Assembly: GCA_038496445.1 (NCBI GenBank)
Contig: JALMLS010000208.1
Span: forward strand, 62,001 to 126,000
Length of the DNA stretch: 64,000 nucleotides
Direction of reading: 5' to 3'
Source: Trichosphaerium sp. ATCC 40318
Lineage: Eukaryota > Protista > Tubulinea
This document shows positions 18,965-57,512 of this stretch, in pieces. The position numbers were made by a program, and so were the translations under genes. The notes beneath the pieces were generated by a model. The model was not told the DNA's origin, did no database searches, and saw only the letters and a program-made list of their open reading frames with translations. Each line of letters starts with the position of its first letter. The first letter of the stretch is position 1.

Positions 18965-20523
18965 ATGCCTAAAATGTTGTTTATCGCTATGGCACTTTGT
19001 TTCCTGTTAAACACAAGTGTTCTAGCTCAGAAAGTAGTTAAACACCCAGATACTGTTCTATTTGTTGTACGATCATATCCATCACGTTTTTATGACTATG
19101 TAACTTTGTTTTAGAGTGGCGCTTACGTTGCCTGTGATTTACAATATGACAAAGACATCTTGGCGTTTCTTCAAGAGAACGTAAATGTAACTTGTATTAG
19201 CTCTTCTGTAATAGACAATGATCCTTCCATTGTACAAGACTATGGCGCTGTGGTATGTTAACATTATTTTCAAAGTGGCTTTATTTTAACACTTCTGTTG
19301 CGTGTCGTTTAGGTTATTTCAGAGTCAACGTTTGCGTTATGGCTAGACGAAGTATTCGAGTATGATACACCTATTATATCATACGAACGTGCTGCTTATG
19401 GTTATATGAAAGTGGACACCTCCTTGAGCGCTGGTCGTGAGTAAATTTTGATCCAAAAAAACTGTTTGCTAACTATAAATAAGTGCTACACGAGAATAAC
19501 TCTGAGATTGTAATAGCAGATTCATCCAGCCCACTCGCAGCAGGATACTCCGACCTCACTACTATATTCAATATTTCTAGTGTTCTATCATCTATAAATA
19601 GTACCGGATCACTTGGAAGAGGCGGTAGAGTAATAGCAGAAACAGCGACTGATCCTAGACAGCCTTCATATTTTGTGTTTGATGAGGTACTATCATAAAG
19701 TTTAAACAGATATCTGACTTCTCTACGTTAGGGTGATGAACTCGGAGATGGTAGTCCAGCACCAAGTTGTAGGATTGGGTTTTTTCTTGGAGACACTTCA
19801 GGTTCTTATTTAAATGAAGCTGGTAAAGCAATGCTTCTCGCTTCTGTTAGATACTGCTTAAATTGTGGATCAATTTGTAACGGTCCTCCTCCTTTTGTCG
19901 GAGCTTTTTGTGAACGCGATGATTGGAAACTAGAAGGTAGCGCAACTGTGGAAGGATCATTGACAATGGTTGAAAATATTACAATCAATGGCGATGTGGT
20001 ATTGCGCACAGGAAGTGAGGTGATTCTGGCAACAAGTGTGGTTGTGAGTACCCTAAAAATATTGTTTGGTTTTACTTAACCTGTCACGTGTCATGTTAAT
20101 CTTACTTTTTTTGTGTTAGATATCTGTTACTGGTTGTTTGGATCTTAAAGGAAGAGTAGTAATGAATGAGACTTTTCAAGATGGTAAAGAAGTCGTGTTG
20201 GCTAACTTCAACAATAACAGCTCATGTGTTGATGTTGATGATGTGAAAGTTGTTAACAAAGGTGGAGAGGGATGCGGAGATGTACAAAAAAGAATTAGTT
20301 CTGTTGTTTTTGTGTTTAGTCAATGTCAAAGTCAAGAAACAAATGTGCGTCTTCACTTTTTACTTCAAGTACTGATTGATGATGTTTTGCCTAGAATGGT
20401 ATTGGTGTTGGAGTTATTATTGGCATAGTTATAGCAATCATTGTTGTTATAGCTATCATTGTTGCTGCTATTGCAACTAGACCAAAGCGAAGTAGTTTGG
20501 TTCATGGAAAACCAAAAAAATAA
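18965..20523 (+). CDS. Type I membrane protein, paralog A (bacterial-like N-terminal domain, Cys knuckle, beta-rich stalk, TM, short basic tail)
   Basis: Signal MPKMLFIAMALCFLL; VISES..., SYERAAY, ADSSSPLAAGYS, APSCRIGFFLGD, CNGPPPFVGAFC; TM GIGVGVIIGIVIAIIVVIAIIVAAI; tail RPKRSSLVHGKPKK*. Confidence 0.8.
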
Positions 20524-52384: not shown

Positions 52385-53507
52385 ATGCAGCTATCTTTCG
52401 CACTTGTTTTTGTAGTATTAGCTTTAGCAACAACTGTTTATGCAATACCGGATTTCAAAGTCCGTAAAAATGGTTCTATTGCAAATGGCACCTTTTGCGG
52501 AGGTTGTAAGTTCGCTATAAACTCTATAAAGACTAAGGGTACTATATTTGCTCCTTTTCGCGTCTGACTCGTCTTTAAGGTTGCTCCTACGTTTGTGCTG
52601 TTGATATGGAGCCTCTTACGCTAGTTGCTTGTAGATTGGTTGTTGTTACTCTTTGCAAGCAAGCAGTCAAGCTACTAGCGGAAGGTGCAACTGCTGAAAA
52701 CATTTGCACTGCTTTTGGTACGTTAATCATTTTAGAAGAACGAACTGAGTTCCTTGCTGAGAGCAATCTAAAAACGCATAGTGTTTTGCTTTTTTTGGGT
52801 ATTTTACTTAAAAGTACCACCACAGTGGTGTACACTTTTTGTTGCATTAAAGGAAAGAGTTGCTTTTTGGGCTTTCGTTCTTTTGTACTCAAAATCCAAG
52901 AGCGCCGGATATGTATTGTAGAGTGGAAGCGTACATTTTACCAACCGAGAGTTCTTTCAGTTTTTTGCAAATTACAAAAAAAACCCCAAAAATTCGTTTT
53001 GTTTTAACAGTTTTCGCAAAACCTGGCTCATTGACAATACTCTATGTCGCCTCTACTAGTTATTTATATACTATTTTTCTTGTCTATTACATTCTTTCGC
53101 CCTTTTTCATTACCAGCTCTTGTGTATTTGGCTCTTTTTTTTTGCTGTAAGCCTTTCTTGCTTTTTTCTTTAATCACTCAGCTCACACTCTACTACAGGT
53201 ATGTGCAACCCACAAAATGGGACATGTAAATGCGGTGCTTGTACAAAGTATGAGTATGGTAAAAGATGTCTTTCTTTTAATAGAATGTGCCCAAATGAAC
53301 CATTTCAGCGGTTTGATGCATCTCTTGATAAAATTGAGAAAGAGGCATACTCAAAAAGAGACAATGAAGGTTTGTTTACCGTTACTTTGGTTTTTTGATT
53401 ACACTCAATGCTTTCTAGGAGATAATACTAAACGATCAAGTGAAGCAATTTGTTTCAAAGGCCAGTGCAATGCCGAAAACGATGGATGTTGTTTGACATG
53501 TTTTTGA
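52385..53507 (+). CDS. Secreted Cys-rich protein with a saposin-like N-terminal region
   Basis: Signal MQLSFALVFVVLALATTVYA; FCG|GC...C...LCKQAVKLLAEGATAENICTAF; Cys-rich tail ending CFKGQCNAENDGCCLTCF*. Confidence 0.6.
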
Positions 53508-54629: not shown

Positions 54630-56510
54630 ATGCGCAAATAAATTTATTGTTCCTTGCAACCAAATTAGCCCAGTTTTTTAATGTCGATAGTTTCAACTTC
54701 ACAAAAGGTAAAAAAATCTGCCCATCAAATTGTATCAGTCAACTCCTGCGATTGGGTCGTTCGATGCAATGCAGACAAATAAAAGCAAAGTTAAGATCAG
54801 GAAAGGTTACACGTGATTCTTTGCAAATCATGATTTGATTCACAGTTGCAAAGGAGTATACTAGACTAAACGAAAGATTGCTACAATGGTATGAAGTTTT
54901 CATCTTGAGCCTTCATCGTGTAAAATGTTACAGGGCTTTGCCGACCAAATTGTCGCTAAGAAAACTCTATTTTACGCTGTTCTCCAAAACAATTCTGTTT
55001 GTCTAGCGTTTGCTTCATAGTTGTCTATGGGCGTCCATTTATTATAAGCGTGGCCTTTTAGTACGGTATTTAATTTGTCGGTGGCTGTCCCTAAAACAAA
55101 CTCAACAGAGTGTTATTCGAACATCTACATATGTGCAAAGGCCATACGGAGGCGGAAACAAATAATTTCGCCTTGGTAACCATTCTCAAACCGATGAGTA
55201 CACTATCGCGCAATACTCTCTGCTTCAACTACTATTGATGACAGCTGCACGTACAAACGTGCCGTTGTGTTTGTTCAATAGGCAGTAGTTCCCTTTTTGA
55301 GACCCCAATTTCTGTATTTGGAACAAACTGAGCAAAACAGGACAAAATGAACACAACTGCTATCATTCTTCTCGCACTATGCCTCGCATGCGTCTACGCG
55401 ACCTCTGTAAGCTCAGCAACCTGATTTCTTCGTATTTATACGTTTTTAGGCCAACAAGCATTGTAGCAAGCAATGCAGGAGGTATAGTAAACAAAATCAA
55501 GCAGATATCGACTGCGAAACATCTTGCGACTCTGACGCGGAAAATAAAGCAACTAGCGATGAAAAAACAACAAGCAAGAGATGGGTTGGATGTAGATGGT
55601 GTTGTACTTCTAGAAACTGTAGAAAAACATGGTGGGGTTGTCATTCTTATGAATCATTTGGATGGTGGTGCCGATCTGCTTAAAGGGATAATAATTACGT
55701 CAACTTGTTGCGTAGCAGAAAAGAAAAATCAAAAAGTCAATCAAACTTCGATCGCTTTTTTTTGTTCAATAAAAGGCAGAACGACGTGTACTCCAAATGT
55801 AAACTTGTTTATTCTACAGCCATTAATGAATCAAATATACCTACTTGTGAATCAATCTGTTAGGACTGCAACTACCAACAAAACCTGGCTCTTATCGGCC
55901 TAGATGGTAGAGAAACTAACAGGTAAAGAAAAGACTTCATGAGGGCCACTTGGTTTCAGGCGCTTTAAAAGATTCTGATTGAAGGTAACTTTTTGCTTTG
56001 ATTTCTTTATCACGTGTCCTTGTAGCTTCTGTATGTCTTCTTTCGCTTTCTCAATCAAGAAGCTCTTTCCTGCTCTCTATGCCTTTCTCTTCATTTTGCT
56101 AGTTCGTTTGTCGAGATCCCTGCATCAGCGACGATTTTATCTTCTCTATTATTTTACTTGTCTTTCACGTGATTTGCTTGCTTCTCGTTTCTCAACGTTT
56201 TCTTGCTTGTCAAGTTCTTCTTTTAGCTATTGACTTCATTGATTATATATTATATTAATGAGACGTGATTGTTGCTGCGTGTTCCAGAATTGATTTTGTG
56301 GGAAATGCTGTACTATTTTTGACAAACTTCCACGTGTTGTAGCGTAATAGTGCACACTTCAACAACTCGAACTTCTTATGCCATTGTATGCAATTAGAAC
56401 TAGCACAATATTTGAGGGTAACAGAGTTCACCAGCACCTTAACCTAACTTAAACTAAAACCTTTTTTAGTGTTTTTCCAAATCGAGAGAAACTTGCACAA
56501 GAAGACGCTC

Positions 56511-56797
56511 ATGCAAACCAAAACTATTTTATTCGCTCTTGCACTCTTATGCCTTATAGTAGCGTAAGTTTTAACCGCTAACTAGCACCATTTCCTTTAA
56601 ACTCACTAAAAACCTTTAGAACGGAAGGATTCTTTTCAAAATCGATTTGTAGGAAGTACCCTCGCCTCAGACTTTGCCGAAGGCGTAGAGCGCCTATAAG
56701 ACCTACCAGACGTCCGTCGAGAGTAGCTTTTTATGCAACATATTGCAGACGATACCCTGAAAGGTGCAGGGGAGTTGTAGGGGGAATATCAGTGTAG
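56511..56797 (+). CDS. Small secreted Arg-rich, Cys-containing peptide (candidate antimicrobial peptide), 2 exons
   Basis: Exons 56511-56563 and 56620-56797, intron gtaagt...ctaac...ctttag. Translation MQTKTILFALALLCLIVATEG-FFSKSICRKYPRLRLCRRRRAPIRPTRRPSRVAFYATYCRRYPERCRGVVGGISV*. AATAAA at 56811. Confidence 0.8.
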
Positions 56798-56998
56798 GTA
56801 AAAAAAGTCCAATAAATAGTACACTACTTCAATTTTGTCGACGACATACCAAGACCAAGACCTATACATTGGTACACTAAGATTCTCATCATCCCGTATT
56901 ACTTTATGGCTTTCTTGTTAGTATTGTCTGATTGCTGATGTCTAATAACAACCAAGTATTGATTTTAAGTTGTGTAAGTTAATTATTACTATATGCTA

Positions 56999-57512
56999 CT
57001 ATGTTCGTCTCTTACCATTAACATACATTCTGTTTAATAAGATGTCCGTCTTCATGCCATGTATTGCATTCGCCATTTCTCTTTCCTTCAACATACATTC
57101 CGTGTACATTACGCTGTCCATTCTCATACCATGAATTGTATTCACCATTTTTCTTTCCTTCAATATACATTGCTTGTGCCTGGAGTTGTCCATTTGCATA
57201 CCATTTCCTTTCCTCACCAGTCTTCTTGTAATTAGTATAGTTTTGTTGCACCTCAAGTTGCCCACTCTCACCATTCTTCGTACCTGGAGTGTATAAAGCT
57301 TGATCCTTAAGTGTATCATTGTCATGCAACAAACACCATTCACTCTCTTTCCATCGATATAGGTTGTTTTTAACTGAATATGTCCATTCGCATACCACCA
57401 GCCGTTTACTGTTGCATATAGACAGGATCCAATTGCAAGCGTTTTCACATTTTTTAAGACTTATGATGACTCCGAAAGGGGTAGTGGTCAAGAGGCTTCC
57501 GCTTCTTTGCAA
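56999..57512 (-). pseudogene. Frameshifted MORN-variant repeat gene
   Basis: WYANGHIQLKTTYIDGK, KWYANGQL...EGKKNGEYNSWYENGQ, spread across two reading frames. Confidence 0.8.

Follow-up and report, generated by a model that had tools for sequence, protein, structure and literature searches.

The locus found at positions 56511-56797 of the window (the whole 64,000-nt stretch of DNA from Trichosphaerium sp. ATCC 40318 that was analysed here) raises two questions, namely whether there is a gene at all and, if so, whether its product is an antimicrobial peptide. An earlier note on this DNA had leaned to the affirmative on both, proposing a hidden two-exon gene for a highly cationic secreted peptide and, with it, a possibly new antimicrobial family. 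Since a 71-codon open frame is common at 37% GC, the GC content of the 70-Mb assembly (642 contigs), the whole configuration was put to the test. The first proposal stood up, on the strength of sequence statistics, splice features and an internal repeat, and the locus is probably a real orphan gene, with two exons, present in single copy and restricted to its lineage, that is predicted to encode a secreted polycation, function aside. The second did not, the locus being a singleton whose link to antimicrobial peptides is one of composition.

Reading the window at 56100-57200 and translating the exons recovered all the parts that the earlier note had described (Table 1). On the plus strand, two exons and one intron predict a 76-aa product; if exon 1 is left unspliced, its frame runs into a stop at 56565. 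The translation of exon 2 is TEGFFSKSICRKYPRLRLCRRRRAPIRPTRRPSRVAFYATYCRRYPERCRGVVGGISV, which starts with TEGFF and ends with GGISV, and this exon has a GC content of 48%, compared with 41% in long ORFs and 32-37% in the flanking DNA. The 123 nt upstream of the ATG at 56511 contain no other ATG, and the start context is unremarkable, in a genome that shows no strong Kozak-like preference. The CACGTG palindrome located upstream is a possible promoter element, perhaps one that also serves a minus-strand neighbour.

Table 1. Features of the candidate gene and of its surroundings, in window coordinates.
Feature	Position	Strand	Description
Candidate exon 1	56511-56563	+	ATG + 17 codons + 2 nt = 53 nt; translation MQTKTILFALALLCLIVA; leader MQTKTILFALALLCLIV(A)
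Candidate intron	56564-56619	+	56 nt, 34% GC; donor GTAAGT, acceptor TTTAG
CTAAC and branch-like ACTAA inside the intron	56578-82; 56605-09	+	CTAAC (56578-82); ACTAA (56605-09), 10 nt before the acceptor
Candidate exon 2	56620-56797	+	Phase 2; 58 codons, then TAG at 56795-97; Arg-rich 4-Cys peptide
Loop 1, CRKYPRLRLC	56648-56677	+	Cys10-Cys19 of the exon-2 peptide; predicted disulfide
Linker, RRRRAPIRPTRRPSR	56678-56722	+	Polybasic, 15 residues, 20% Pro; potential dibasic processing sites, putatively cut
Loop 2, CRRYPERC	56744-56767	+	Cys42-Cys49 of the exon-2 peptide
AATAAA	56811-56816	+	Candidate poly(A) signal, 14 nt 3' of the stop
CACGTG palindrome	56331-56336	.	175-180 nt upstream of the ATG at 56511
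K/E-rich ORF pieces	~55900-56240	-	Left flank; broken across frames; e.g. LKEELDKQENVEKREASKSRERQVK, ...IEKAKEDIQKLQGHVIKKSKQK...
MORN_2-repeat gene	stop at 57018	-	Right flank
F-box-like/LRR_6 gene	start 57787	+	Beyond the MORN_2-repeat gene
Model B exon 1	55347-55406	+	Signal exon, MNTTAIILLALCLACVYATS; 1.1 kb upstream of the candidate
Model B intron		+	43 nt, GTAAGC...TTTTTAG
Model B exon 2	55450-55683	+	77 aa, 10 Cys, Trp-rich; AATAAA at ~55766

The predicted leader fits a crude, home-made signal-peptide rule, with K4, a 14-residue hydrophobic core (TILFALALLCLIVA), Ala at -1 and Ile at -3. If cleavage takes place after A18, the mature form has 58 residues, among them 15 Arg (26%), 2 Lys, 2 Glu and 4 Cys, with a net charge of +15; its proline content is 8.6% (5/58) and the PRP motif is absent. 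With the 21-aa leader favoured in the earlier note, a recount of the remaining 55 aa gave the 15 Arg, 2 Lys and 1 Glu, and the net charge of +16, that had been stated there. The two similar Cys loops and the linker between them are present too, and the resemblance of the loops exceeds what composition yields: CRKYP/CRRYP is the best 5-mer self-match of the peptide, and it was reached in none of 2000 composition-preserving shuffles (the self-match in longer words was reached in 8/2000 for 6-mers and in 17/2000 for 8-mers).

GTAAGT is not the favourite donor of this genome, and for this reason the fit of the candidate splice signals was checked. In an ORF-joining test, the sites of each hexamer were scored on whether they could link two open frames (50 codons or longer) that needed an intron of 35-150 nt between them. 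The success rates were 18% for GTACGC, 14.5% for GTACGT and 12.7% (21/165) for GTAAGT, against a background of 5.3% for all sites. In the 264 kb examined, GTACGC and GTACGT, both with a C at +4, are the dominant 5' splice hexamers, and GTAAGT is a real class that ranks third. With these three donors, introns are concentrated at lengths of 42-72 nt. A set of 35 inferred introns with a single solution spans 35-89 nt (mean 65, 36% GC), and in most of them a motif of the ACTAA/CTAAT/CTGAC type lies 10-25 nt ahead of the YAG, which is often TTTAG. Introns of this genome being mostly 42-90 nt long, the 56 nt of the candidate lie within range, and the TTTAG ending at 56619 is the first YAG downstream of the ACTAA at 56605-09. 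The putative intron therefore fits the genome in its donor, length, GC content, branch-like site and acceptor, and the splice signals and the AATAAA that the earlier note had called clean are present.

The searches for chance look-alikes were run on a test sequence of 264 kb of this genome, that is, on both strands of the window and of 20 other stretches (L009-L028). A strict finder took a signal-like ATG exon followed by GTAAGT, then 35-150 nt up to a YAG, and beyond it an ORF no shorter than 40 codons; the finder scripts put every ATG alike through crude filters for signal, charge and Cys. With the reservation that all these null-test figures are indicative only, because the criteria were framed after the candidate had been seen, the strict finder returned a single match in the real 264 kb, the candidate locus itself, and none in the reversed real sequence, and 40 third-order Markov simulations gave a mean of 0.125 matches per 264 kb, none of them combining a charge of at least +8 with at least 4 Cys. 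With the broader donor class GT[AG][ACT]G, 11 ATGs were obtained from the real 264 kb, as opposed to 2.0 from Markov and 5 from reversed sequence, and among the models found in real sequence are two paralogous secreted proteins, V-ATPase subunit c and a sulfatase in which the CxPxR motif is recognisable. In random ORFs of 50-90 codons, a charge of at least +12 with at least 4 Cys was found in 0.1-0.6%, and an AATAAA within 40 nt past the stop in about 3%.

These results bear on the possibility that there is no gene, and that the spacer separating two minus-strand genes contains, by chance, an open frame along with a hydrophobic ATG-ORF, GTAAGT, YAG and AATAAA. Signal-like ATG ORFs are indeed frequent by chance, with 92 per 264 kb in real sequence versus 38.5 in simulated sequence, so that some 40% of them are expected without any gene. 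In the same direction, the 5 broad-donor models per 264 kb of reversed sequence (11 in real sequence) imply tens of chance structural models in the 70-Mb genome. Some 1,300 stretches of this genome have been read, and tens of bare structural look-alikes are to be expected genome-wide, of which very few should combine all the extra features. It is this combination that argues against a chance origin, the joint features being very improbable under every null tried. The GTAAGT, an intron length and a branch-like site typical of the genome, and a first YAG that is in frame occur all together, and to them are added the charge of at least +12 with 4 Cys (0.1-0.6%), the AATAAA 14 nt past the stop (3%), the ATG-free leader region and the internal protein repeat that 2000 shuffles did not reproduce. 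With both sides considered, a chance open frame is judged unlikely.

The codons of exon 2 speak for the absence of a gene, its usage being non-coding-like. Its codon-usage log-odds is -10 bits, a value exceeded by 98% of real coding chunks and by 94% of short non-coding ORFs, and this score against coding is driven by the odd amino-acid composition; a score restricted to synonymous codons falls between the coding and the non-coding distributions, the codon bias of the genome being too weak to decide. The low 'recognition' score given to exon 2 by a protein language model, which falls among the values of shuffled sequences, points the same way, as does the failure to find paralogs in the genome or homologues in the protein collections. 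A single-sequence AlphaFold model was of low confidence (pLDDT 61, pTM 0.31), which does not suffice for searching by fold.

Codon usage that is indistinguishable from non-coding sequence would likewise be expected of a young orphan locus, either de novo or fast-decaying, that is transcribed and perhaps spliced without having any selected function. This reading also accords with the single copy and the lack of detected relatives, and with a divergent/convergent intergenic site at which pervasive transcription is plausible. Against it stands the full set of signals, which is intact, and the nature of the repeated motif. At the DNA level, the two CR[KR]YP copies differ by synonymous third-position changes (TGT/TGC, AGG/AGA) and by one K/R codon, and these synonymous differences would fit, and hint at, constraint on the protein frame, with the proviso that five codons prove nothing. 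A locus of this kind, devoid of selected function, is considered very unlikely.

The search for relatives was run exon by exon. Within the 70-Mb genome, searches for paralogs by protein, by DNA and by motif pattern returned the candidate locus only. The pattern built on C-R-[KR]-Y-P, which the earlier note had suggested as a way to detect paralogs, uncovered none: the matches to C-R-[KR]-Y-P-x-C-R were at control level (3+3 vs 2+3). Three identical pattern matches (C81:242998, C81:253725 and C211:87920; CRRYPICPC, …LEVCRRYPICPCSNAMGF…) turned out to belong to the short ORF of an unrelated repeated element. Exon 2 had no relatives among 5.8 billion proteins in a word-index search, and a full HMMER search of 1.84 billion representatives gave none either, its one match being compositional and confined to six short segments in a protein of 1176 aa with 11% Arg. 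In Pfam, with E values of up to 10 allowed, Pap_E4 was the sole match (E = 0.15, compositional), there was no match among PDB sequences and no usable one in the ESM Atlas, and Rfam and tandem-repeat scans of the region gave nothing relevant. Because the candidate is single copy and relatives are absent from the protein searches, there is no family to speak of, and the expression 'new family' was dropped.

These blanks have to be read together with their controls. The absence of a 32-mer of exon 2 from metagenome contigs is uninformative, since an exon of V-ATPase subunit c from the same genome, taken as the positive control, is absent from them as well. The blanks in the protein searches say nothing on expression, since the neighbouring MORN exon and the two-exon model upstream of the candidate (model B, Table 1) are likewise absent from the word-index collection; a neighbouring 388-aa LRR ORF is also without record in the protein and contig look-ups. 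As a separate observation on copy number, near-identical sets of Cpn60_TCP1 exon matches, with equal exon spacing, occur on two or three contigs (C428, C61, C397, C275/C332), and haplotigs or segmental duplicates of recent date may be present in the assembly. For the candidate locus, a second copy of this kind is lacking.

The candidate lies within a gap of 780 bp between two minus-strand features. As the other intergenic gaps in the vicinity measure about 100-250 bp, a small plus-strand gene would fill this one neatly, an argument of little weight. The K/E-rich pieces of the left flank may be a small intron-containing coiled-coil gene, or else a spacer rich in pyrimidines, read on its complementary strand; such a gene would be oriented divergently to the candidate. 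Model B has the same build as the candidate (signal exon, short intron, Cys-rich exon), and its presence counts in favour of a gene at the candidate locus. It occurs once in the genome, relatives and Pfam matches are lacking, and its frame is ambiguous, since a 174-aa ORF (55379-55903) overlaps it in a different frame and an alternative model with a 98-nt intron exists. That the candidate and model B might be tandem paralogs was considered and rejected, as their DNA aligns at random level and BLASTP pairs only CRRY (E = 0.22). Further upstream, plus-strand ORFs at 52385 and 53943 (exons to ~54629) have convincing signal peptides, Cys-rich downstream exons and no Pfam family. Taken together, the signal-peptide ORFs at 52385, 53943, 55347 and 56511 suggest a local, 4.5-kb cluster of genes for orphan secreted proteins.

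Two other features of this DNA were recorded along the way. One is an inverted pair of paralogous secreted-protein genes at 18965 (+) and 22650 (-), with the N-termini MPKMLFIAMALCFLLNTSVLAQKVVKHPDTVLF and MSKILFTALVLCLITSFRAQKIVKYPDTVLF, each of which has its first intron, of 47-48 nt (GTACG..TTTTAG), in the same place. The other is the abundance of CACGTG, often as TCACGTGA, which occurs 198 times in the 264 kb versus about 31 expected from base composition, frequently just 5' of gene starts or between divergently oriented genes (e.g., 56011, 56166, 56331, 57540, 57702, 18959 and 51506, and also in L009-L028). This motif is probably a major promoter or regulatory element of the genome.

As for what the product might do, transcription, splicing, secretion, disulfide pairing, processing at RRRR and activity are all matters that we infer from the sequence, and the following scheme should be read in that light. 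Exon 1 would provide an ER signal peptide of 18-21 aa, routing the product into the ER, and removal of the 56-nt intron would allow exon 2 to supply a polycation of 55-58 aa with a net charge of +15 or +16. Disulfides between Cys10 and Cys19 and between Cys42 and Cys49 may close two small loops of Arg, Tyr and Pro, both of which start with C-R-[KR]-Y-P, and the Arg/Pro linker that contains RRRR would keep both loops apart. In the likeliest mode of action, the product, as a secreted or vacuolar polycation, would bind polyanionic microbial envelopes through its guanidinium-rich surface and would by its design be an antimicrobial or prey-killing effector. The evidence for such an antimicrobial role is the composition of the peptide, and the role itself is regarded as doubtful.

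Other functions have to be weighed for a real gene. The peptide could be a pro-peptide cut by a kexin-type protease into two small looped, signalling or pheromone-like peptides, a toxin directed at eukaryotic prey, or a polycationic component of a matrix, an adhesive or the cyst wall. Dibasic motifs are the classic processing sites of kexin and furin, and the RRRR hinge, TRR and CRR are such motifs; cutting at them would free two fragments with one CR[KR]YP loop each. On account of these sites, a two-peptide precursor, be it for signalling or for defence, is a serious rival. In addition, the plus-strand neighbours at 52385, 53943 and 55347 are also orphan secreted proteins without a family, and nothing links the peptide specifically to bacteria. 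On the other hand, abundant Arg in combination with aromatic residues and disulfide loops of small size is no less typical of host-defence peptides, and none of these alternatives has specific support in the sequence. A non-antimicrobial function of a real gene is considered a tentative possibility.

The boldest reading takes the orphan gene as the founding member of an unseen design for protist defence or predation, a polycation with a double CR[K/R]YP disulfide loop, possibly cut at RRRR into two looped peptides, that would be delivered to food vacuoles to kill bacterial prey. This is considered quite unlikely; if true, it would mean that amoebae possess antimicrobial arsenals other than saposins, whose rapid evolution leaves no homologues behind. 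Whatever its function, the predicted gene is one more example of the small spliced genes for secreted peptides that escape ORF-based annotation in protist genomes.

A comparison with known peptides helps to place the candidate. Protamine-like proteins are nuclear, have an Arg content of about 50% or more and carry no signal peptide; an identity of this type was discarded, as the candidate has 26% Arg and a hydrophobic N-terminal leader. Closer at first sight are the Arg-rich loop peptides with a single disulfide, such as the bactenecin dodecapeptide, the peptides with 'rana-box' loops and thanatin. What the candidate has in common with them is compositional only, namely short Cys-bracketed loops of 6-8 residues that are rich in Arg and in hydrophobic or aromatic residues. 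In contrast to the bactenecin type, it would have two loops per chain of 55-58 aa, its CR[KR]YP motif has no known counterpart among them, and no homology was found. If the gene is real and its product antimicrobial, the CR[KR]YP loop would represent a compact new scaffold for peptide work.

The earlier note had also named Pro/Arg-rich peptides among the classic antimicrobial designs. The published definition of the proline-rich antimicrobial peptides (PrAMPs) comprises at least 25% Pro, a net cationic charge and a target inside the cell (DnaK or the 70S ribosome), the PRP motif being indicative and not essential (PMC7736402). The candidate resembles PrAMPs such as Bac5/Bac7, PR-39, apidaecin and oncocin in being cationic and Arg-rich and in having RP dipeptides (IRPT, RRPS), and its net charge of +15 or +16 agrees with the definition. 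Its proline content, however, is 8.6% (20% in the linker) and it has no PRP, and an assignment to the PrAMPs was rejected. Arasin 1 combines an N-terminal Pro/Arg-rich region with a subsequent Cys region that contains two disulfides, and has 32% Pro (PMC3543460). The candidate would share with arasin 1 and the penaeidins the condition of a small secreted cationic peptide with an Arg/Pro stretch and four Cys that could potentially form two disulfides. It was nonetheless set apart from this type: the searches revealed no homology, its Arg/Pro stretch is a linker between the loops, its Pro content is 8.6% and PRP is lacking. The hosts differ as well, being crustaceans in the case of arasin and the penaeidins and a protist in the case of the candidate.

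Among the antimicrobial polypeptides of amoebae, a single class is well established, that of the saposin-like pore formers, which includes the amoebapores, the naegleriapores and the Dictyostelium Apl proteins (PMC5890168, PMC11542183). Delivery through a secretory or phagosomal route is a property of these proteins that is also proposed for the candidate. A saposin-like identity was rejected on several grounds: Pfam gave no SapB, there are 4 Cys in place of the six-Cys pattern, no amphipathic helical bundle is predicted and the candidate is far more cationic. If the gene is real and its product does prove antimicrobial, it would be a non-saposin, Arg-rich and disulfide-looped addition to what is a very short list of amoebic effectors.
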